Assembly (NCBI GenBank): GCA_013416795.1
Contig: RQSC01001361.1
Location: 2,919 to 20,473 of the forward strand
Length of the DNA: 17,555 nt
Reading direction: 5' to 3'
Source of the DNA: Prasinococcaceae sp. CCMP 1430
Lineage: Eukaryota; Plantae; Prasinodermophyta
In this document: piece by piece, positions 3,796 through 16,949 of the stretch
Position numbering within the stretch: the first letter of the stretch is position 1
Layout of the letters: each line of letters opens with the position of its first letter
Notes under the pieces: generated by a model
What the model was told of the DNA's origin: nothing
The model's input: only the letters and a program-made list of their open reading frames with translations
Database searches by the model: none
Translations under genes and position numbers: made by a program

Positions 3796-4520
3796 NNNNN
3801 NNNNNNNNNNNNNNNNNNNNNNNNNNNNNNNNNNNNNNNNNNNNNNNNNNNNNNNNNNNNNNNNNNNNNNNNNNNNNNNNNNNNNNNNNNNNNNNNNNNN
3901 NNNNNNNNNNNNNNNNNNNNNNNNNNNNNNNNNNNNNNNNNNNNNNNNNNNNNNNNNNNNNNNNNNNNNNNNNNNNNNNNNNNNNNNNNNNNNNNNNNNN
4001 NNNNNNNNNNNNNNNNNNNNNNNNNNNNNNNNNNNNNNNNNNNNNNNNNNNNNNNNNNNNNNNNNNNNNNNNNNNNNNNNNNNNNNNNNNNNNNNNNNNN
4101 NNNNNNNNNNNNNNNNNNNNNNNNNNNNNNNNNNNNNNNNNNNNNNNNNNNNNNNNNNNNNNNNNNNNNNNNNNNNNNNNNNNNNNNNNNNNNNNNNNNN
4201 NNNNNNNNNNNNNNNNNNNNNNNNNNNNNNNNNNNNNNNNNNNNNNNNNNNNNNNNNNNNNNNNNNNNNNNNNNNNNNNNNNNNNNNNNNNNNNNNNNNN
4301 NNNNNNNNNNNNNNNNNNNNNNNNNNNNNNNNNNNNNNNNNNNNNNNNNNNNNNNNNNNNNNNNNNNNNNNNNNNNNNNNNNNNNNNNNNNNNNNNNNNN
4401 NNNNNNNNNNNNNNNNNNNNNNNNNNNNNNNNNNNNNNNNNNNNNNNNNNNNNNNNNNNNNNNNNNNNNNNNNNNNNNNNNNNNNNNNNNNNNNNNNNNN
4501 NNNNNNNNNNNNNNNNNNNN
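3796..4520. other. Assembly gap (725 N)
   Basis: N run. Confidence 1.
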
Positions 4521-5389: not shown

Positions 5390-6093
5390 TTGTGTGTGCG
5401 TGCGTGTGCATGTGTGAATAGTGTGTGCGCGATGTGTGCATATGTGTGTGTGTGCGCGAGTGTGCGCGCGTGTGCGTGCGTGTGTGTGCGTGTGTGTGCC
5501 CGTGTTTGTGTCAGTGTGGACGTGCGCGCGCGCGACTGCGCGGCCGTGCGTGCGTGCGTGCGTGCGTGTGCTTGCGTGTGTGCGTGCGTGCGTGCGTGCG
5601 TGTGCTTGTGTGTGTGTGTGTGTGTGTGCTTGTGTGTGTGTGTGTGTGTGCGTGCGCGCGCGCGCGTGTGCGTGTGCGCGCACACCTGTGCGTGTGCGCG
5701 CGTGCGCGTGCGTGTACGCGCGCGCGTGTGTTCGTACGTCCACGTCTACGCATGTGTGTGTGTGCCCGCGTGTGCGCGCGTGTGTGTGCGTGTGTGTGTC
5801 GCGTGTGCGCGTGTGTGTGCGCGCGTGCGCGCGTGTGTGTGTCAGTGTGGACGTGCGCGCGCGCGACTGCGCGGCCGTGCGTGCGTGCGTGCGTGTGTGT
5901 GCGTGTGTGTGCGTGTGTGTTGTGTGTGTGTTGTGCGTGTGCTTGTGTCTGCGTGTGTGTCTGCGTGTGTGTGTCTGCGTGTGTGTGCATGTGTGTGTGC
6001 GTGTGCATGTGTGTGTGCGTGTGCATGTGTGCATGTGTGTGTGCGTGTTCGCGCGCGCGTGTGTGTGCGTGAGTGTGCGCGCGCGCGCGCGCG
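5390..6093 (+). repeat. ~700-bp (GT/GC)n alternating purine-pyrimidine low-complexity tract with an internal ~60-bp duplication
   Basis: Mixed TG/CG dinucleotides; gtcagtgtggacgtgcgcgcgcgcgactgcgcggccgtgcgtgcg starts at 5510 and 5841. Confidence 0.95.
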
Positions 6094-6182: not shown

Positions 6183-6886
6183 NNNNNNNNNNNNNNNNNN
6201 NNNNNNNNNNNNNNNNNNNNNNNNNNNNNNNNNNNNNNNNNNNNNNNNNNNNNNNNNNNNNNNNNNNNNNNNNNNNNNNNNNNNNNNNNNNNNNNNNNNN
6301 NNNNNNNNNNNNNNNNNNNNNNNNNNNNNNNNNNNNNNNNNNNNNNNNNNNNNNNNNNNNNNNNNNNNNNNNNNNNNNNNNNNNNNNNNNNNNNNNNNNN
6401 NNNNNNNNNNNNNNNNNNNNNNNNNNNNNNNNNNNNNNNNNNNNNNNNNNNNNNNNNNNNNNNNNNNNNNNNNNNNNNNNNNNNNNNNNNNNNNNNNNNN
6501 NNNNNNNNNNNNNNNNNNNNNNNNNNNNNNNNNNNNNNNNNNNNNNNNNNNNNNNNNNNNNNNNNNNNNNNNNNNNNNNNNNNNNNNNNNNNNNNNNNNN
6601 NNNNNNNNNNNNNNNNNNNNNNNNNNNNNNNNNNNNNNNNNNNNNNNNNNNNNNNNNNNNNNNNNNNNNNNNNNNNNNNNNNNNNNNNNNNNNNNNNNNN
6701 NNNNNNNNNNNNNNNNNNNNNNNNNNNNNNNNNNNNNNNNNNNNNNNNNNNNNNNNNNNNNNNNNNNNNNNNNNNNNNNNNNNNNNNNNNNNNNNNNNNN
6801 NNNNNNNNNNNNNNNNNNNNNNNNNNNNNNNNNNNNNNNNNNNNNNNNNNNNNNNNNNNNNNNNNNNNNNNNNNNNNNNNNNNNNN
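6183..6886. other. Assembly gap (704 N)
   Basis: N run. Confidence 1.
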
Positions 6887-7815
6887 AGCCCTCTCGCATT
6901 TCGCGAGTCTCGATCCCTAAAAATGTCCGAACCCAAACCGGGGGCCCGGGCATCGGCGTCAACGCAAACCCTCTCGCATTTCGCGAGTCTCGATCCCTAA
7001 AAATGTCCGAACCCAAACCGGGGGCCCGGGCATCGGCGTCAACGCGAACCCTCTCGCATTTCGCGAGTCTCGATCCCTAAAAATGTCCGAACCCAAACCC
7101 GGGGGCCCGGGGGGCGCTTTTTTGGACGGAATATCCGCGCACAAAAATGCCCGAAAATAAAAAATCAAAATCGCGGCATGCCGCGATTTTCCCGCCGTGA
7201 TTTTCGGCGGACTTTTTGATTGAAAAGAAATCGAAAAGGAAAAAAAGGAAACGCATCTCGCAGCATTTGCGGCGTTGCGCGCCGGTGTGCGCGTTGAACT
7301 CCGGCTTCGCGGCGTCCGCGCGCTGTAGCGCCCCCGCGCGCGCCCGCCCGCACGCAGGCGCGCGCGCGCGTGCGCGGGTGCTAATGACGGCGCGCGCGCG
7401 CGCTCCGCGGGAAATCTCATAACGGGTTTATAGTAAGTAGGGTTTATTTAGTATGAGTTATTGCATGTACAATTTTGCGGATTTGGCAGGGCGGGTTGCG
7501 GTTTGGTGATTGGGACCCGCGCGGCACTGACGGGAGCGCGTGTCAAATGCTTTTTTACTCGCAGTGCGGGCACACCCCGCGCGCGGGTTCCGACTCGCAG
7601 GCAGTGCCGAGGGCTCGCGCGGGCGCATTGAGCCCACCACCGTGGTCGCCTGCCCGGTGGGCGTCTTCGTGTTCGTCGCCGCCGCTGCGGCGCCGCAGGT
7701 CGCCTTCCGGCCCACCGCTGCGAGGCGGGTGGCCAACCGCGCGCCGTTTTTTCGCGTCGATGCGCGCTCGCCTCGCTGACCCGCGCCGCGCCGCACGGGA
7801 CCGCGCGCTGCGAGC
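6887..7815 (+). repeat. Long direct repeat, copy 2 (left end hidden in gap); includes the 80-bp array at 6889-7111
   Basis: Near-identical to 2491-3419. Confidence 0.95.
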
Positions 7816-8042
7816 GAGCGCGCGGGAGCGAGCGCGCGAAATTCGGCCCACGCGGCGCTCTGGACCCCGCCGCCGCGCTGGCAAACTCTCGCGCGCTGCG
7901 GTGCGCCGAGGGAGTCGCGGGCAGTGAGCCAGCAGCCGCTCAACAGCCCCATTTCGATCGCGTCACGCCGACTGCGCAGCGCCTCACTCGCAGCCGCGCC
8001 GCGCGTGCACGCGCGCGCCGCAACACGCGCTACTCGCACGCC

Positions 8043-9260
8043 ATGCGCACGGGCACGCCTTTGGCACGCTCCGCGAGTGGCGCGTGCTCTCGCGCGCAGA
8101 CGCGGCCGCGGCGATGGTGCGATGACAATGCGATCACGAGCTTCGTTTTCACGTCACTGACTGCGCCGCACTCTGGTCGCACACGCGCGGCGCGTGCACG
8201 CGCGCGCCGCAGCGCGCCACGCTCGCAAGCCATGCGCACCGGCACGCCTTTGGCACGCCCCGCGAGTGGCGCGTGCTCTCGCGCGCAGACGCGGCCGCGG
8301 CGATGGTGCGATGACAATGCGATCACGAGCTTCGTTTTCACGTCACTGACTGCGCCGCACTCTGGTCGCACACGCGCGGCGCGTGCACGCGCGCGCCGCA
8401 GCGCGCCACGCTCGCAAGCCATGCGCACCGGCACGCCTTTGGCACGCCCCGCGAGTGGCGCGTGCTCTCGCGCGCAGACGCGGCCGCGGCGATGGTGCGA
8501 TGACAATGCGATCACGAGCTTCGTTTTCACGTCACTGACTGCGCCGCACTCTGGTCGCACACGCGCGGCGCGTGCACGCGCGCGCCGCAGCGCGCCACGC
8601 TCGCAAGCCATGCGCACCGGCACGCCTTTGGCACGCCCCGCGAGTGGCGCGTGCTCTCGCGCGCAGACGCGGCCGCGGCGATGGTGCGATGACAATGCGA
8701 TCACGAGCTTCGTTTTCACGTCACTGACTGCGCCGCACTCTGGTCGCACACGCGCGGCGCGTGCACGCGCGCGCCGCAGCGCGCCACGCTCGCAAGCCAT
8801 GCGCACCGGCACGCCTTTGGCACGCCCCGCGAGTGGCGCGTGCTCTCGCGCGCAGACGCGGCCGCGGCGATGGTGCGATGACAATGCGATCACGAGCTTC
8901 GTTTTCACGTCACTGACTGCGCCGCACTCTGGTCGCACACGCGCGGCGCGTGCACGCGCGCGCCGCAGCGCGCCACGCTCGCAAGCCATGCGCACCGGCA
9001 CGCCTTTGGCACGCCCCGCGAGTGGCGCGTGCTCTCGCGCGCAGACGCGGCCGCGGCGATGGTGCGATGACAATGCGATCACGAGCTTCGTTTTCACGTC
9101 ACTGACTGCGCCGCACTCTGGTCGCACACGCGCGGCGCGTGCACGCGCGCGCCGCAGCGCGCCACGCTCGCAAGCCATGCGCACCGGCACGCCTTTGGCA
9201 CGCCCCGCGAGTGGCGCGTGCTCTCGCGCGCAGACGCGGCCGCGGCGATGGTGCGATGAC
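8043..9260 (+). repeat. 189-bp tandem satellite, 6 full units plus a partial one, cut by the N join at 9261
   Basis: Unit starts (ATG) at 8043, 8232, 8421, 8610, 8799, 8988, 9177. Units 2-6 look identical; unit 1 differs at 2 positions; a degenerate part-unit lies at ~7996-8042. Confidence 0.98.
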
Positions 9261-9328: not shown

Positions 9329-11164
9329 ATGACACCACCAACAAATCCTCCCCACCAAACGACGCCGACGCCGACGGTGCACACCGTCTTCAGCACCGAG
9401 TGCACGCCCTACTTCGACTGGCAGAGCCTGGGCATGGCGTACACCCACCGCCTCGTCGGCCAGCCCGGCCGGCTGACGCGCCTGCTCGCGTGCGACGGCG
9501 AGCGGCTGGGGGCGTACCGCGCGGCCGGCCGCGTGGCGCTCGGCGCGCCCCACATGGAGACGCACGTGCACCCCAACTTCGCGCGCCACCCGAGCGGCGA
9601 CGTGTACGCGCCGTACAACAAGCCGGGCAGCGTGGACCACTGGCTGCGGCACGCCGATCCGCCCGTGACGGCCGACTACGTCATCGTCGCCGACGCCGAC
9701 ATGGTGCTGCGGAAGCCGCTGCTGCCGTTGGAGCTGGGCGCGCGGCCGGGGCGGCCGGTGGGCGCCAAGTTCGGCTACCTGCGCACGAACAACTACCTGT
9801 GCGAGCGGCACGTCGAGGCGTCCAAGCGCCACCTGTGCTCGCAGTGCGGCGGCTTCGTGGTCTACCACCGCCCGGACCTCGAGCGCGTGGCGCCGCTGTG
9901 GTACCACTACACCGACGTGATGCGCCACGACCCCGAGTCGTGGCACGACACGGGCGACGCGTACTGCGACGGCAAGCACCCGCCGTGGATCTCGGAGATG
10001 TACGGCTACATGTTCGCCGCGGCCAACGCCGGCGTGGAGCACGTCACCAACGGCGACTTCATGATGTACCCGGGCTACGTGCCCCCGGCGCGCATCGACC
10101 CGGGCCTGCTGCACTACGGCCTCGAGTTCCACGTCGAGGCGCCCGGCCGCCCCAAGTGGTCGTTCGACAAGCACGCGCACACCTCCAGGGACATGCTGGC
10201 GTGTCCGGGCGAGCTCTTCCCCGAGCCGCCCGACGAGGCCGCGCTCGCGGGCATGCCGCTCTCCGACGAGACGCGCGGCAAGCTGCTCGTCATCGAGAAT
10301 GCCAAGCTGCTCAACGCCGCGCTGGAGTGGCACCACAACGCCACGTGCGGCAACCGCGGCTCGCTGCGCGCCGACGGCGTCAGCGCCAAGTTCCACGTGC
10401 CCGTGCCGCAGAAGGCCACCGAGCTCTACGAGCTGCAGCGGCGGCGGCGGCGCTGCGTGGACCAGAACGACAGGTGCGCAATGTGGGCCGACCGGGGGGA
10501 GTGCCAGCAGAACGCGCCATTCATGCGCTCGCAGTGCGCGCGGAGCTGCGGCGAGTGCCAGGCCGCCGCCACGCCAGCCGCGGGGGGGGCCGGCCTGAGG
10601 GGCGGACGCGGCGGCAGCGGCGACGGAGCGGCCGAGCCAGAGGGCGCGACCGCCGCGACCTTCGAGTTCGCCGTGCGGCTGCCCGAGATTGCGGCCGCCG
10701 GCGAGGACGGCGCCGGCGAGGACGGCGCCGCCGAGGAGCAGCTCGCCGAGGACGGCGCCGGCGAGGAGCAGCTCGCCGAGGTCCTGCAGGATGACGTGGG
10801 CGAGGGGGGCGACCCGCTCGGGGGCGCCGACGTGGGGGCCATGCGGGCGCGCGAGGGCCACCGGGCGGGGGAGCTCCCGCGCGGCGGGGGGGGTCACGGG
10901 TTCGTCGTGCGCGCGGACGTCCGGTCGGGGGCGCCGGAGCGCGCGCGAGAGGCCGTGGAGGTCCGCCCGTTCCAGCGCGTGGAGCGCGCGCACGTGGGCA
11001 ACGTGGGCAGCAGGGACCTCTTCACCGGCGGGGCGGCCGTGTGGCTCGTCGCGGTGCTCGCGTTCGTGTGCGCGTGCTTCGCGCCGCCCGGGCGGAGGGG
11101 GGCGGGCGCGCCGCGCAGGGCCAAGCTGGCGGCGATGCAGCGGAGGCCCGCGGCGCGGCGCTGA
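9329..11164 (+). CDS. Peptidyl-serine alpha-galactosyltransferase (SGT1/SERGT1, GT96)-like glycosyltransferase with ShKT domain, acidic linker and C-terminal TM helix; 5' end possibly incomplete
   Basis: VHTVFSTECTPYFDWQ...GQPGRLTRLLAC, YAPYNKPGSV, DADM (DxD, 9692-9700) and WISEMYGYMF match GT96/GT95 motifs, and the FSxECxxYFDWQ start points to GT96. Six-Cys ShKT at 10454-10558; hydrophobic stretch at ~11033-11083; no signal peptide visible. Confidence 0.85.
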   Translation: MTPPTNPPHQTTPTPTVHTVFSTECTPYFDWQSLGMAYTHRLVGQPGRLTRLLACDGERLGAYRAAGRVALGAPHMETHVHPNFARHPSGDVYAPYNKPGSVDHWLRHADPPVTADYVIVADADMVLRKPLLPLELGARPGRPVGAKFGYLRTNNYLCERHVEASKRHLCSQCGGFVVYHRPDLERVAPLWYHYTDVMRHDPESWHDTGDAYCDGKHPPWISEMYGYMFAAANAGVEHVTNGDFMMYPGYVPPARIDPGLLHYGLEFHVEAPGRPKWSFDKHAHTSRDMLACPGELFPEPPDEAALAGMPLSDETRGKLLVIENAKLLNAALEWHHNATCGNRGSLRADGVSAKFHVPVPQKATELYELQRRRRRCVDQNDRCAMWADRGECQQNAPFMRSQCARSCGECQAAATPAAGGAGLRGGRGGSGDGAAEPEGATAATFEFAVRLPEIAAAGEDGAGEDGAAEEQLAEDGAGEEQLAEVLQDDVGEGGDPLGGADVGAMRAREGHRAGELPRGGGGHGFVVRADVRSGAPERAREAVEVRPFQRVERAHVGNVGSRDLFTGGAAVWLVAVLAFVCACFAPPGRRGAGAPRRAKLAAMQRRPAARR

Positions 11165-11843: not shown

Positions 11844-12341
11844 NNNNNNNNNNNNNNNNNNNNNNNNNNNNNNNNNNNNNNNNNNNNNNNNNNNNNNNNN
11901 NNNNNNNNNNNNNNNNNNNNNNNNNNNNNNNNNNNNNNNNNNNNNNNNNNNNNNNNNNNNNNNNNNNNNNNNNNNNNNNNNNNNNNNNNNNNNNNNNNNN
12001 NNNNNNNNNNNNNNNNNNNNNNNNNNNNNNNNNNNNNNNNNNNNNNNNNNNNNNNNNNNNNNNNNNNNNNNNNNNNNNNNNNNNNNNNNNNNNNNNNNNN
12101 NNNNNNNNNNNNNNNNNNNNNNNNNNNNNNNNNNNNNNNNNNNNNNNNNNNNNNNNNNNNNNNNNNNNNNNNNNNNNNNNNNNNNNNNNNNNNNNNNNNN
12201 NNNNNNNNNNNNNNNNNNNNNNNNNNNNNNNNNNNNNNNNNNNNNNNNNNNNNNNNNNNNNNNNNNNNNNNNNNNNNNNNNNNNNNNNNNNNNNNNNNNN
12301 NNNNNNNNNNNNNNNNNNNNNNNNNNNNNNNNNNNNNNNNN
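11844..12341. other. Assembly gap (498 N)
   Basis: N run. Confidence 1.
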
Positions 12342-13194
12342 CGCTGCGGCGCCGGCGGCGCGGCGAGCGCGGCCCGCTCCTCGCCCTCGGGTGCGTGGGA
12401 CGACCTCGCGCGCCGCGCGCTCATCGTCGTCATTGAGCGCCTGGGTGCCACCCGCGCGCACGCCGAAGCCTCCGAGGCAGAACTGGAGGCCCTGCGCGTC
12501 GCCGTGACCGGGGGCGGCGGCGCCCGCTTCGACCTCGTTCATCGCGTCGGCGCGTCCGCCGCCGGCGACTCGGCCGCGCGCGTCTGGTGCGCGTCGCGCG
12601 CGCCAGTCGCGCCGATAGCGGACACGGCATGCGCGGCAGCGCTGCTCGCGTCGCAGGGCGTGGGCGCGCATGGCGCGCGGGTGATCGCGTGCGCTTCCGA
12701 GACGCGCCAGCTGATGCGCTCGGCCGAACGGGCCTGCCCGCGGGCTCGCGCCACAATGCTCCTGCGCGCCGCGGGTCCCGAGGGAGGCGAGGACGCGCCC
12801 GCGGCGGCGGCGGTGCTGGCGGTTGTCGGCGCGGGGATGGTGGACGTCGACGCGCGCTGCTGCTGCGAGGTCGGGAATACTGCCCTCGCCCTGGCGGCCC
12901 TGTACGGCCGCCAACAGGTCGTGCGCGCGCTCCTAGCAGCGGGCGCGAGCGTCCGAGCGGACAACGCGCACGGCCACACGCCGCTCATGCTGGCGGCGTG
13001 GGAGGGTCACGCCCCCGTCGTGGAGTTGCTGCTCGAGCGCGGCGCCGACGCCGGCCAGCGCAGCGCCAGCGGTGGCACCGCCCTGCTGCGCGCGTCGACG
13101 GCGTCCTGCGTGCGGCTCCTGCTGGCTGCGGGGGCCGATCCGGAGGCGCGCAACTACGCCGGGTGGAGCCCACTGATGTTCGCGGCGGTCCGAG
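12342..13194 (+). CDS. Ankyrin-repeat protein, visible exon 1 (frame open from the gap; start not visible)
   Basis: Ankyrin repeats GNTALALAALYGRQQVVRALLAAGA, GHTPLMLAAWEGHAPVVELLLERGA, GGTALLRA...CVRLLLAAGAD, GWSPLMFAAVRG. The upstream frame also reads protein-like (WDDLARRALIVVIERLG...ELEALRVAV) back to 12342. Confidence 0.85.
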
Positions 13195-13590
13195 GTGCGC
13201 CCGCCCCTTCTTCCCCCCCCCCCCCTCCCGCTGNGCGCGCCGCCCCGCCCGCCGCCGCCGCCTGTGCCGCCCGCAAACCCCGCCGCCGATGGCGCGAGAT
13301 GCGGTATGCATCAAAACCTGAACCACGTCCCTCGAGTACGCGCGCTTCCGTATATCAAAACGAGTCATTCCATGCGACGAAGGAGACCCTACTTTGCAGC
13401 GCTCGCGTGTGCAGTCCGACCAGCCGCCCCCCGCGCGTGCCCCACCGCGAGCGCTTCCTTCAGCCTCTCGCGCCCGTGCCCGGCCGCTGCGAGTCGCGCC
13501 CGGGCCTCGCCCTCGACCTGTCTGACATCTCTCTCTCTCGCGCGCGCTCGCGCACTCTCCCGCGTGCGCGTGCCGGCTCGGCGACACCAG
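13195..13590 (+). other. GT-AG intron in the ankyrin gene
   Basis: Donor CGAG|GTGCGC, acceptor ACCAG|GAC. Removal restores a consensus ankyrin repeat SPLMFAAVRG-RAACVCALLEAG. Confidence 0.8.
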
Positions 13591-13799
13591 GACGCGCCGC
13601 GTGCGTGTGCGCGCTGCTCGAGGCGGGCGTCGCCAAGGACGCCGTTGGTCCGGCGGGGCGCACCGCGCTCGAGATCGCGCGCTCTCGGGGCCACGAGGAG
13701 TGCGTCCGGCTGCTGAGCGGCCCCAGCGACGCAGAGGGCAGCGTGCCGCCGCCCCGGCCGGCGGTCGCCGGCGCACGCACCAAAGCGGCGCACTCGTGA
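13591..13799 (+). CDS. Ankyrin-repeat protein, terminal exon
   Basis: RAACVCALLEAGVAKDAVGPAGRTALEIARSRGHEECVRLLSG...; stop TGA at 13797-13799. Confidence 0.85.
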
Positions 13800-14982
13800 G
13801 GAGCGGAGCGCGGTGCCGCACGAAGTCCTTTTTAGGTTCAGGGTTTATTTTCTGTCTAACCCCATACCGTCTGTACCCTAACTCCTCGGACCGCTCGGCG
13901 CACCCGCGCGCGCGCGCGGCGCGGGGCGGCGTTCGAATGGCGCGCGGAAGCGCGCTGCGGCACGACGGGGAAGAGAGCCCGCACCGGCCGCTTCGGACGC
14001 CCCCCCTCCCTCCTACCCTCATCTGACTGAGCCTCGCGCGCGGCCCTTCCTCCTTCCTCGGGCGCGCGGTGCGCGCCGGCACCGCACCGCGCTCGGGCCG
14101 CCGAATGTAGACAGACCTACGACCGAGTCCCTCATGTTTTGACCAGCGCGCCGTGTGGAACCGCGTGCTCACGCGGCGCGCGCGCGCCGCTGTGCCGGCC
14201 AGCGATCGATGGAAGGCCTTTTTTCGCGGAAAAAGGCCTCCGCCTTTTTTCGCGTACCGCGCGACCGACCGACCGACGGCGCGCGCTTTTTCGCGCGTCC
14301 AAATCCAGCGCCGCCCCGCAGACCGGCGCGCTTTTCCGCGCGTCTCGCGGCGCGCTTTGCGGTCTTTGCTCATCGAATTAAAGGCGAACGCATTCGGCGC
14401 AAAGCGAATCCAATCCGCTACACGCGGATTGGATGGATTTCCTTTGGCGCCGGCGTTTGTTTGCGCGTTTCATCCCGAGACTTTCGAAACGCGCGCACCC
14501 GACACCTGTGCGCTCGGCGCTTTCGCTCCCGCAGCTTCCGGTACATCAGCTTCCGGGCCCCGCGAACCCGGCAGCCCCGCGGCCGGCGGCCGGCGGCGGA
14601 AGCGAGCGCCAGTCGGTCGCGGGGTGAAGGGCCGGCGGCGCCGCGCCGCCAATTATTCCGTCCCTCAATTCGCGCTCGGTCGCGCGTTTCGCTCGGCGCG
14701 GCCTCGTCTCTCTTCCCATCACTCCTGGTGTCGCGGTCCCCTCGCGGCCGCGCGTTTCGCGCCCGCCCCTCCCGCCGGATGCCCCCCGCGGCCGCGCGNC
14801 TGCGCAAGGCGGCCTCGCTCGCACCCAGCAAGCACGGCGAGGGCGCCGCGCGGCGCTCACGCGCACGCGAACGATGGCGACGCGGCAAGGACAAGGCGTT
14901 GCTGTACGCCCGTGGGCAGCTAGTTCTGCCAAAATCGCCTGTGTGGGGCAAGGTGGTGAGGATGCTCGGATTGTTCGTGGTG

Positions 14983-15204
14983 ACGACAGTCGGCGTTTCG
15001 AGGACTCTTGAACGTCGACGGCGCAAAGCAATCTCCGACAGCTCCGCCACCGAAGCACCTCCAATTGCGCGCCGCGCGCCGCGATCGGGTGCTGACGCGC
15101 GCTCGCGTGGCGCCTCACCCGCGCCCGACGCGTTCGCGCCCACTCCCCCGGCCCCGCACGCCTCACAGGACGCGCTGTCGATGGCCGGCGGTGGCTCCCA
15201 GTAG
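14983..15204 (+). promoter_or_regulatory. Putative conserved-peptide uORF of VTC2/GGP (ACG start 14983, 73 aa; alternative in-frame ATG at 14962)
   Basis: ACG-initiated peptide TTVGVSRTLERRRRKAIS...RSRGASPAPDAF...QDALSMAGGGSQ* matches the recalled plant GGP uORF landmarks in order (T..GVSR.L, RRK, RGALP, DLLFLAGGG). It ends 270 nt upstream of the VTC2 ATG. Confidence 0.65.
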
Positions 15205-15473
15205 AGGTATAGTAGGAGTGGGCAGCACAGCAACCGCACGCGCGACTTACGAGAGCGACAACCGCTCGACCGGCGCGACACGGGGCTTCGGGAGGCGGCA
15301 GCGCACCGCGCCCTCCCTCTCTTCCCTGGAGCAAGCCTCCTCGCGCCGCCCGCCAGGCGACGGCCGCGGGCCGCCGCGGGCGCCAGGCGCACAAGCAGCC
15401 CACGCACACACACACACACACGCGCGCGCGCTCGCAGGAGCGAGAGGCCCGACCGCTCTCCTCTGCGGCGACG

Positions 15474-16949
15474 ATGCCGCCCCACACGGGCCTGCACATG
15501 GGCCACGCCGCCACCACGGGCGACCTGGTCCGCCTGGGCCGCATGGTGAGCACCATGTCGGCCGTCCCCGCCGCCTCCGACGGGGCGCGCGGGCCGACAA
15601 CGCCGCCGCTCACGCCGGGGGCCGAAGGTGAGCCCCCCGCCGCCGGCGCCAAGGCGCCCTTCCTGCCGGCGGACGCGGCCTCCAAGTTTCTCAACGCGGA
15701 CGACCTGCCCACGTCGGTCCTCCCGACCATGCGCTTCGACCCGGCCTTCAACGAGCCGCTCTCGTCGCGCATGGGCAGGCGCGTGGTCAGCTGCGGGGAC
15801 CTCGCGTCGCTGTCGCGCAGGCAGTCGCGCGTGAACCTCGAGGCGCTCGGCGGCTCGCCCCCCCGCGCCGACGGCGCGAGTGCGGATGGCTCGCCGCCGC
15901 CCGCCATGTCCCCCTCGGGATCCGACGCGTCGCTCTTCGACGCGACGCTCCTCGAGCGCTGGGAGGACCACCTGGCGGAGGGCCGCTTCCGCTACGACGT
16001 GACCGACTGCCCGACCAAGACGCTCGAGGGGCGCTTCCGCTTCATCATGCAGCTCAACCTGGGGCGCGCGTCCAAGAAGCGCCAGACCGAGTTCTCCGCC
16101 GACAACGTGGTGCAGTCCTTCGACGGGTCCAAGTTCAACTTCACCAAGGCGCGCCAGAACGAGATGGTGTTCTCCTTCCAGCCGACCCTGCCGCTCCACC
16201 GCACGGTCATGCGCAAGTCGCCCTCCATGGCCGAGTTCTCCAACGCGCAGACCGCCGAGGAGGCGCCCAACTGCGTGCTCATCAACGTGTCCCCCATCGA
16301 GTACGGCCACGTGCTGCTCGTGCCGCGCATCACCGACTGCCTGCCGCAGCAGATCACGCTCGACACGCTGCACCTCGCGCTGCACATGGCCGCCGAGTCC
16401 AACAACGAGCACTTCCGCATCGGCTTCAACTCGCTGGGCGCGTACGCCACCATCAACCACCTGCACTTCCAGGGCTACTACCTCTGGCAGAATTTCCCGG
16501 TGGAGCTCGCCGCGACGGCGCCGATGTTCAAGGCGAGCGGCGTGACGGTCGCGCGCACCGTCGACTACCCCGTGCGCGTGCTCGTGTGCTCCGCCCGCGA
16601 CAGCGGCGCCAACCTGAAGGAGCTCGCGCGCGTCGTGTCGCACATGTGCGAGGCGTTCCAGGCGACCAACACGCCCTTCAACCTGCTCATCACGGAGAGC
16701 GGGCGCTGCATCTACGTCATCCCCCAGCGCTTCTCGCGCGCCATCGCCAACGGCGAGGTGCCGCAGGACGTCATCGACACCGGCGTCAACCCGGCCGTGT
16801 TCGAGATCGCGGGGCACATGGTGCTCAAGAGGCAGGAGGACTACGACCAGCTCGACGAGCCCAAGACCGTCCGCATGCTCGAGCAGGCGACCCTTTCCGA
16901 GGAGGACTTCGGCTCCATCGCCGCGCGCTTCCAGCGCGACCTCGCGTGA
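15474..16949 (+). CDS. VTC2: GDP-L-galactose phosphorylase (ascorbate biosynthesis), intronless, 491 aa
   Basis: WED...GRFRYDVT.C.TK, QLNLGRASKKRQTEF, FDGSKFNFTK, INVSPIEYGHVLLVP, GFNSLGAYATINHLHFQGYY (HIT-like HLHFQ at 16458-16472), PFNLLI, VNPAVFEIAGHMVLKRQEDY. Confidence 0.95.
   Translation: MPPHTGLHMGHAATTGDLVRLGRMVSTMSAVPAASDGARGPTTPPLTPGAEGEPPAAGAKAPFLPADAASKFLNADDLPTSVLPTMRFDPAFNEPLSSRMGRRVVSCGDLASLSRRQSRVNLEALGGSPPRADGASADGSPPPAMSPSGSDASLFDATLLERWEDHLAEGRFRYDVTDCPTKTLEGRFRFIMQLNLGRASKKRQTEFSADNVVQSFDGSKFNFTKARQNEMVFSFQPTLPLHRTVMRKSPSMAEFSNAQTAEEAPNCVLINVSPIEYGHVLLVPRITDCLPQQITLDTLHLALHMAAESNNEHFRIGFNSLGAYATINHLHFQGYYLWQNFPVELAATAPMFKASGVTVARTVDYPVRVLVCSARDSGANLKELARVVSHMCEAFQATNTPFNLLITESGRCIYVIPQRFSRAIANGEVPQDVIDTGVNPAVFEIAGHMVLKRQEDYDQLDEPKTVRMLEQATLSEEDFGSIAARFQRDLA

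Follow-up and report, generated by a model that had tools for sequence, protein, structure and literature searches.

The uORF (upstream open reading frame) within the 5' leader of land-plant genes for GDP-L-galactose phosphorylase (GGP, encoded by VTC2 and VTC5) is the best-known metabolite-linked plant uORF with a non-AUG start; it is also a favoured gene-editing target for higher vitamin C in crops. The abstract of Laing et al. 2015 reportedly gives its range as "mosses to angiosperms". In the curated table of conserved uORFs it forms homology group 131, listed as conserved in asterids, rosids, monocots and "other". The literature searched extends this range no further than plants beyond the angiosperms and describes the control of ascorbate in algae as different; neither full-text searches nor reviews on ascorbate and on conserved-peptide uORFs gave any mention of such a uORF for GGP in algae of the chlorophytes or prasinodermophytes, though Laing et al. 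2015, Vidal-Meireles et al. 2017 or Urzica et al. 2012 may contain a remark. In land plants the change of the ACG start to AUG strongly lowers GGP translation, and disruption of the uORF raises ascorbate (PMC11066809). The present work concerns the leader of the GGP/VTC2 gene on a stretch of 17,555 nucleotides (nt) from the prasinodermophyte Prasinococcaceae sp. CCMP 1430 (contig RQSC01001361.1, positions 2,919 to 20,473), referred to below as the window, all coordinates being those of the window.

Positions 15169-15204 of the forward strand, with the codons DALSMAGGGSQ and the stop TAG, are with high confidence exon 2 of a short uORF of the conserved-peptide kind, located in the 5' leader of the Prasinoderma coloniale GGP/VTC2 mRNA, and the spliced peptide of 30 residues is the algal counterpart of the land-plant GGP uORF core. 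Nothing else in the window matches the uORF profile, and of the conserved core only the D....AGGG half is present there. The main open reading frame (ORF) of the gene lies on the same strand at 15474-16949, encodes 491 residues without an intron and starts at an AUG with A at -3. Its product contains the HIT-type HLHFQ motif, is 100% identical to a database protein with the domains PF26216 and PF26217 (N and C domains of GDPGP1) and is about 50% identical to land-plant GDP-L-galactose phosphorylases; on these grounds it was identified as the VTC2/GGP gene, in agreement with the initial annotation of this DNA, a reading of the letters alone that had placed a VTC2 downstream of a uORF-like frame. 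In a GGP tree the window protein and three relatives formed a 100/100 clade on a long branch, separate from every GGP of chlorophytes and streptophytes. The uORF stop is followed by a spacer of 269 nt (15205-15473, forward strand) up to the GGP AUG, according to the sequence and to the alignment with the metagenomic contigs described below. Within this spacer a (CA)n(GC)n microsatellite at about 15400-15440 differs in length among the metagenomic haplotypes, one of them (L003) having a 15-nt deletion.

The split structure of the uORF was deduced from four Tara Oceans metagenome contigs (L001-L004) encoding a GGP protein identical to that of the window. From 15067 up to the contig ends their identity with the window is about 99%, and upstream of 15067 the alignment detected no similarity. 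Upstream of the equivalent of 15067 they carry ATG GCG AGG AGG GGA GGA GGA CGC ... AAG CCC CAG, then GTGCGCGG, and after 182 or 183 nt there follow CTCACAG and GAC GCG CTG TCG ATG GCC GGC GGT GGC TCC CAG TAG, the last block being identical in all four contigs and in the window. Read as exon, intron and exon, this gives the AUG-started exon 1 MARRGGGRGVSPSFGGKPQ joined to DALSMAGGGSQ and a stop codon, 30 residues in total, with a predicted exon junction of ...AAGCCCCAG joined to GACGCGCTG and a phase-0 GT-AG intron bordered by GTGCGC...CACAG. The intron is 183 nt long in L001 and 182 nt in L002, the difference being one C in the run at 15145-15149. Because of this difference the two exons share a frame only after splicing; with the intron unspliced, L001 keeps them in one frame, and L002 and the window do not. 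Moreover, the read-through frame of L004 contains an in-frame stop in this stretch, and the differences in exon 1 among the Tara haplotypes are solely synonymous (TTT/TTC and CCC/CCA). The one-nucleotide indel, the read-through stop and the restriction of exon 1 changes to synonymous ones therefore argue that the intervening stretch is an intron. The AUG of the uORF stands in a weak context, with T at -3.

The spliced L001 peptide scored 47.7 bits against the uORF profile. A search of 1.84 billion representative proteins with a profile made from unsplit uORF peptides gave 98 small predicted proteins at a cut-off of E <= 0.001. One of them, P0329, of 30 residues, is identical to the predicted spliced peptide and ends with the 11 residues encoded at 15169-15204; it is EukProt entry EP00793_Prasinoderma_coloniale_P003509, gene model PRCOL_00002883-RA. 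This match identifies the species as Prasinoderma coloniale, in agreement with the GC (guanine plus cytosine) content of 69.8% reported for that genome (PMC7455551) and with the isolated GGP clade described above. The initial annotation had supposed that no annotation pipeline would call the element, and the spliced peptide thus turns out to have been called already.

The same intron was found elsewhere. Eight distinct versions of the uORF contain one (the window species, Micractinium, Chlorella, Tetradesmus, Cymbomonas and three metagenomic versions), and in all eight it lies at the same codon boundary, in phase 0, directly before the codon of the conserved Asp. The donors are GTGCGC, GTGCGT, GTAAGT, GTACGT, GTATGG or GCAAGT, with YAG as acceptor. 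For Cymbomonas and Tetradesmus the spliced forms occur as database proteins, the Tetradesmus hypothetical protein joining across this intron, and the spliced Cymbomonas peptide is a contiguous ORF on a Logan contig of 1914 nt, which was taken as transcript evidence.

The comparison of the algal peptides with those of land plants showed a shared core, GRG..[PS].GG.P.D....AGGG, upstream of GGP. The genomic loci of Raphanus sativus and Acorus gramineus both contain it as HGGRGALPSEGGSPSDLLFLAGGG, and these cores align column for column with the algal peptide. In a sister species of the window species, whose GGP is 63% identical, the uORF is present in intronless form (MARRGGGRGVRPSFGGKPSDMQSMAGGGF followed by a stop codon), both on genomic contigs and on transcript-like contigs of 2.0-2.3 kb together with GGP, and a transcript from MMETSP falls in the same protein cluster. 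Two further relatives encode MGGRGVPPSLGGKPKDACALAGGGQRC and MGGRGCRPSFGGKPQDALLLAGGGI, each followed by a stop codon. The claim of the initial annotation that a homolog of the land-plant GGP uORF is present in the VTC2 leader of this alga is borne out.

The element is widespread in green algae. Eighty algal GGP loci from metagenomes were scanned with the profile, a score of at least 15 bits being counted as positive; 42 were positive. All of these matches had the sense orientation and lay 192-837 nt upstream of the first residue homologous to GGP, and the best antisense score among the 80 was 8.0 bits. By best identity to named proteins the positive loci include Ostreococcus species, Micromonas-like clades, Pyramimonas obovata (100%) and Picocystis (94%). 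Ten of the negative loci had too little upstream DNA to be informative. Among named genomes, Ostreococcus tauri has an unsplit AUG-started uORF that ends 48 nt before GGP, Micractinium conductrix encodes MILHLSGGRGAPSSLGGAPQ joined across the intron to DAVRKSGGGNA and a stop, Chlorella variabilis encodes MLIHRSGGRGVPPSLGGRPQ joined likewise to DAVRKSGGGRA and a stop, and the genomes of Tetradesmus obliquus and Cymbomonas tetramitiformis contain split copies. The Tetraselmis striata model TSEL_015894, whose number adjoins that of the GGP model TSEL_015893, carries the core, and so does XP_001693880.1 (P0313) of Chlamydomonas reinhardtii, a predicted protein of 55 residues known from its protein record alone, with the full core and the ending ...CSGGRGAAPSCGGKPKDALSKAGGGQ. 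In every locus examined the peptide is encoded on the same strand as GGP, 48-394 nt upstream of the GGP AUG. Since the element is found across green algae as well as in land plants, its origin probably lies in the common ancestor of green plants, as the initial annotation had suggested in calling the system ancient within Viridiplantae.

Two groups of loci deserve a separate description. In Micromonas-like clades (L015-L029, L061, L068, L082, L091 and L094) the uORF has 49-57 residues with an extra conserved N-terminal block, VQ.KA.H..TGRG; its AUG stands at a fixed distance, 25-32 codons before the core, and a conserved His lies close to where the land-plant motif PHGGRG has its own. An abundant marine clade of low guanine plus cytosine (GC) content, Mamiellales-like and found within L041-L080, with a GGP 59% identical to the Micromonas-like P0006, has no recognisable uORF within about 1 kb upstream; this absence may be a secondary loss.

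The codons of the core provide evidence of purifying selection on the peptide. The pairwise ratio of nonsynonymous to synonymous substitution rates (dN/dS) over the core was 0-0.6 in four clades, a comparison that the initial annotation had proposed as a check and that came out in favour of a conserved peptide. The value was 0.18 between the window species and its sister species and 0.16 between Micractinium and Chlorella, and Ostreococcus tauri and a second Ostreococcus species differ in 22 codons by 12 synonymous and no nonsynonymous changes. As to initiation, nearly all algal versions have an in-frame AUG before the core; two Pyramimonas versions are without it, as in land plants. The non-canonical ACG or AUC initiation of homology group 131 was not found in the same-species contigs or in most algae, where the start is AUG. 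Position -3 of the uORF AUG is a pyrimidine in 19 of 25 cases (T in 17), which are phylogenetically non-independent, the pattern recurring in several clades; the main AUG of GGP has a purine at -3 in nine of nine.

The window itself holds only part of this element. The 3' 102 nt of the uORF intron lie at 15067-15168 on the forward strand, with the acceptor CTCACAG at 15162-15168, and the alignment with L001-L004 begins exactly at 15067; the first 80 nt of the intron are missing. The DNA at 14962-15066 of the same strand is non-coding and specific to the window, with no similarity to L001-L004 and no codon-position GC periodicity. Exon 1 was not found elsewhere in the 17.5-kb window by BLAST or by the profile, the N gaps at 3796-4520, 6183-6886 and 11844-12341 being able to hide sequence; the flanks of these three gaps do not match the Tara upstream region. 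The upstream neighbour in the assembly is a gene for an ankyrin-repeat protein (12504-13799, forward strand; Pfam Ank_2, 2e-26), whose frame fits the GC periodicity at the third codon position (GC3), and contig L003 has a different gene end upstream of the uORF. The breakpoint was therefore placed inside the uORF intron, where the Tara match begins and upstream of which the neighbouring genes differ. The divergence at 15066/15067 falls within a GC-rich run (GCGCGCCGCGCGCC), no repeats were found at the breakpoint, and the assembly contains single Ns as well as sized N gaps. Unrelated DNA stands in place of exon 1 and of the intron's first 80 nt, either through a strain-specific rearrangement or through an assembly error. 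A weak ATG-started ORF at 14875, which loosely resembles exon 1 by eye, gave no profile score and was rejected.

The initial annotation had treated 14962-15204 as one continuous frame. Re-translation agrees exactly with what it reported: a string of 80 residues ending in ...DALSMAGGGSQ and a stop, with ATG at 14962, ACG at 14983-14985 and TAG at 15202-15204. From this it derived an unspliced uORF of 74 residues from the ACG, or of 80 from the AUG as a canonical-start variant, colinear with the plant peptide of 60-65 residues apart from insertions. The frame is indeed open and ends in D....AGGG; it is, however, uninterrupted over 349 codons (14155-15204) in DNA of 72-76% GC, so that its openness is uninformative, and a Pfam search with the frame peptide gave no match. 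The comparison with other frames and with shuffled sequence, which had been suggested as a check, was made with a leave-out profile built without the window species or its sister species and with 2000 dinucleotide (Euler) shuffles. The frame scored 5.9 bits, four other scoring frames reached at most -1.8 bits, the fifth gave no score, and 3 of the 2000 shuffles attained 5.9. The entire score came from the last ten residues; the likeness of the terminal D....AGGG to the plant uORF is a real signal, and it does not extend to the remainder of the frame. With a plant-only profile the frame scored 1.6 bits, a value reached by 42 of the 2000 shuffles.

The N-terminal 69 residues aligned with the uORF peptides of Raphanus, Acorus and Brassicaceae no better than shuffles did (p 0.07-0.6), so that the matches proposed for GVSR.L, RRK and RGAxP are at chance level, and they sit in DNA that is intronic or non-conserved; even Raphanus and Acorus have no conserved plant N-terminus in common. 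The ACG-Thr start and the AUG at 14962 both lie in the window-specific DNA absent from the four same-species contigs, in which the uORF starts at an AUG of its own. The stretch 15067-15168 shows the indel polymorphism and the L004 stop expected of an intron, and the GRG..PS.GG.P half of the core is encoded in a separate exon outside the window, which leaves no place for colinearity with a frame of 74 residues. The unspliced uORF is thus largely refuted and retains next to no credibility.

The window has further features besides the uORF. The ORF at 12985-14373 on the reverse strand has no homologs and was rejected as a gene, the GC3 periodicity placing the gene on the forward strand. The ORF at 9329-11161 (forward strand) has Pfam hydroxyproline O-arabinosyltransferase (HPAT, 3e-17) and ShK-like (5e-9) domains. 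A tandem array at 7988-9260 consists of 6.7 copies of a 189-nt unit that are 98% identical, and two near-identical arrays at 2488-2715 and 6889-7111, each with 2.8 copies of an 80-nt unit, flank a (TG)n tract (5391-6077) and two of the N gaps. No synteny was detected with the sister-species contig L005, whose ABC transporter gene, 242-residue gene and Mog1 gene occur neither in the window nor in L001-L004.

Several observations weigh against the spliced, conserved and regulatory uORF described here. Splicing in the window species is predicted from the annotated gene model and the conserved splice sites, and the exact sequence of the spliced junction had 0 matches among JGI metagenome contigs. 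As the window is without exon 1, the uORF may be broken in this strain. A second profile was partly trained on loci that were scored with it, and 28 of the negative metagenomic loci have enough upstream DNA and no uORF match, those sampled belonging to one low-GC clade (GC about 0.47). A regulatory function of the algal copies would follow from the land-plant system by analogy. Finally, Chlamydomonas is reported to be without ascorbate feedback in the physiological range (PMC9916717, PMC7020166), in keeping with the statement of the initial annotation that the feedback has been considered absent or different there.

The comparisons made here demonstrate the homology, the position before GGP, the splice structure, the purifying selection and the wide green-algal spread of the uORF, and a mechanism can be proposed on that basis. 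Some scanning ribosomes would start at the weak uORF AUG, and their stalling near the GGG-stop region, brought about by the nascent peptide, would keep others from the GGP AUG. The weak-context AUG would take the role of the land-plant ACG through leaky scanning, since part of the scanning ribosomes would pass it in either case. In this way the leader would act as a repressive switch that depends on the sequence of the peptide and in which the degree of stalling would probably be set by ascorbate or a proxy of it, as in land plants; this ascorbate link is the weakest step of the proposed mechanism. It is tempting to suppose, as a tentative view to which we give somewhat less than even credence, that the GGP leader peptide was a translational sensor already in the last common ancestor of green plants, in the form of a short uORF with a weak-context AUG and an intron before the Asp, and that it still feeds back via ascorbate or a proxy in algae including Chlamydomonas, land plants having later lost the intron, extended the peptide and changed the AUG to ACG.

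The conserved uORF might instead repress GGP constitutively or in response to another signal, such as redox state, light or GDP-sugars, the ascorbate link being specific to land plants. Chlamydomonas speaks for this, being reported without ascorbate feedback and yet having a predicted protein with the core, and even in land plants no direct interaction between ascorbate and the peptide has been shown (PMC11066809). The identity of the core residues from Prasinoderma to angiosperms, however, speaks for a single conserved molecular task, and a signal other than ascorbate in the algae is regarded as possible but rather unlikely. It could further be thought that the 30-residue peptide is the product of a free-standing small protein gene that acts in trans, because the annotations of P. 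coloniale, Chlamydomonas, Tetradesmus and Tetraselmis list it as a gene of its own or as a hypothetical protein, and because it is under purifying selection. Against this, it always precedes GGP on the same strand at the short distance given above and shares 2-kb transcript-like contigs with it, no copy away from a GGP gene was found among the fetched loci, and the land-plant homolog acts in cis (PMC11066809); a trans-acting small protein is accordingly very improbable beside the cis-acting uORF preferred here.

The finding of the core in Prasinodermophyta, Mamiellophyceae, Pyramimonadales, Picocystis-like algae, Trebouxiophyceae and Chlorophyceae probably moves the origin of the GGP uORF to the root of the green plants. 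The algal comparison narrows the functional core to about 22 residues, and the algal versions suggest that a weak AUG can stand in for ACG. Intron-split uORFs of this kind escape ordinary uORF scans and become annotated as orphan mini-genes. Chlamydomonas, Ostreococcus and Chlorella are fast and tractable unicellular systems in which peptide stalling and sensing could be studied.

Among known systems, the fungal arginine attenuator peptide (the uORF of CPA1/arg-2) is a short uORF with a weak-context AUG; when the pathway product is abundant, its nascent peptide arrests the ribosome at its own stop codon or close to it. Its likeness to the GGP uORF would be one of mechanism alone, the two being unrelated in sequence and lineage. 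The SAMDC/AdoMetDC uORF (homology group 3) is, like the present one, an ancient uORF of a metabolite pathway that guards a rate-controlling enzyme from green algae to angiosperms; it differs in peptide family, in gene and in metabolite, which is polyamines in the case of SAMDC. The closest system is the land-plant GGP uORF of VTC2 and VTC5 (homology group 131), with which the algal form shares the sense-strand location in the 5' leader of GGP, the core GRG-x-x-P/S-x-GG-x-P-x-D-x4-AGGG, the purifying selection on the peptide and a weak start that would allow leaky scanning. The land-plant uORF starts at ACG or AUC and has 57-64 residues in Arabidopsis, whereas the algal form starts at an AUG in poor context, has 25-60 residues (30 in the window species), is in most clades without the plant N-terminal extension and has its stop codon 1-6 codons after the GGG motif. 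Moreover, a phase-0 intron immediately preceding the conserved Asp divides it in many chlorophytes and in the window species. What is new here is therefore a form of the GGP uORF that is AUG-started, short, often intron-split and pan-Viridiplantae.
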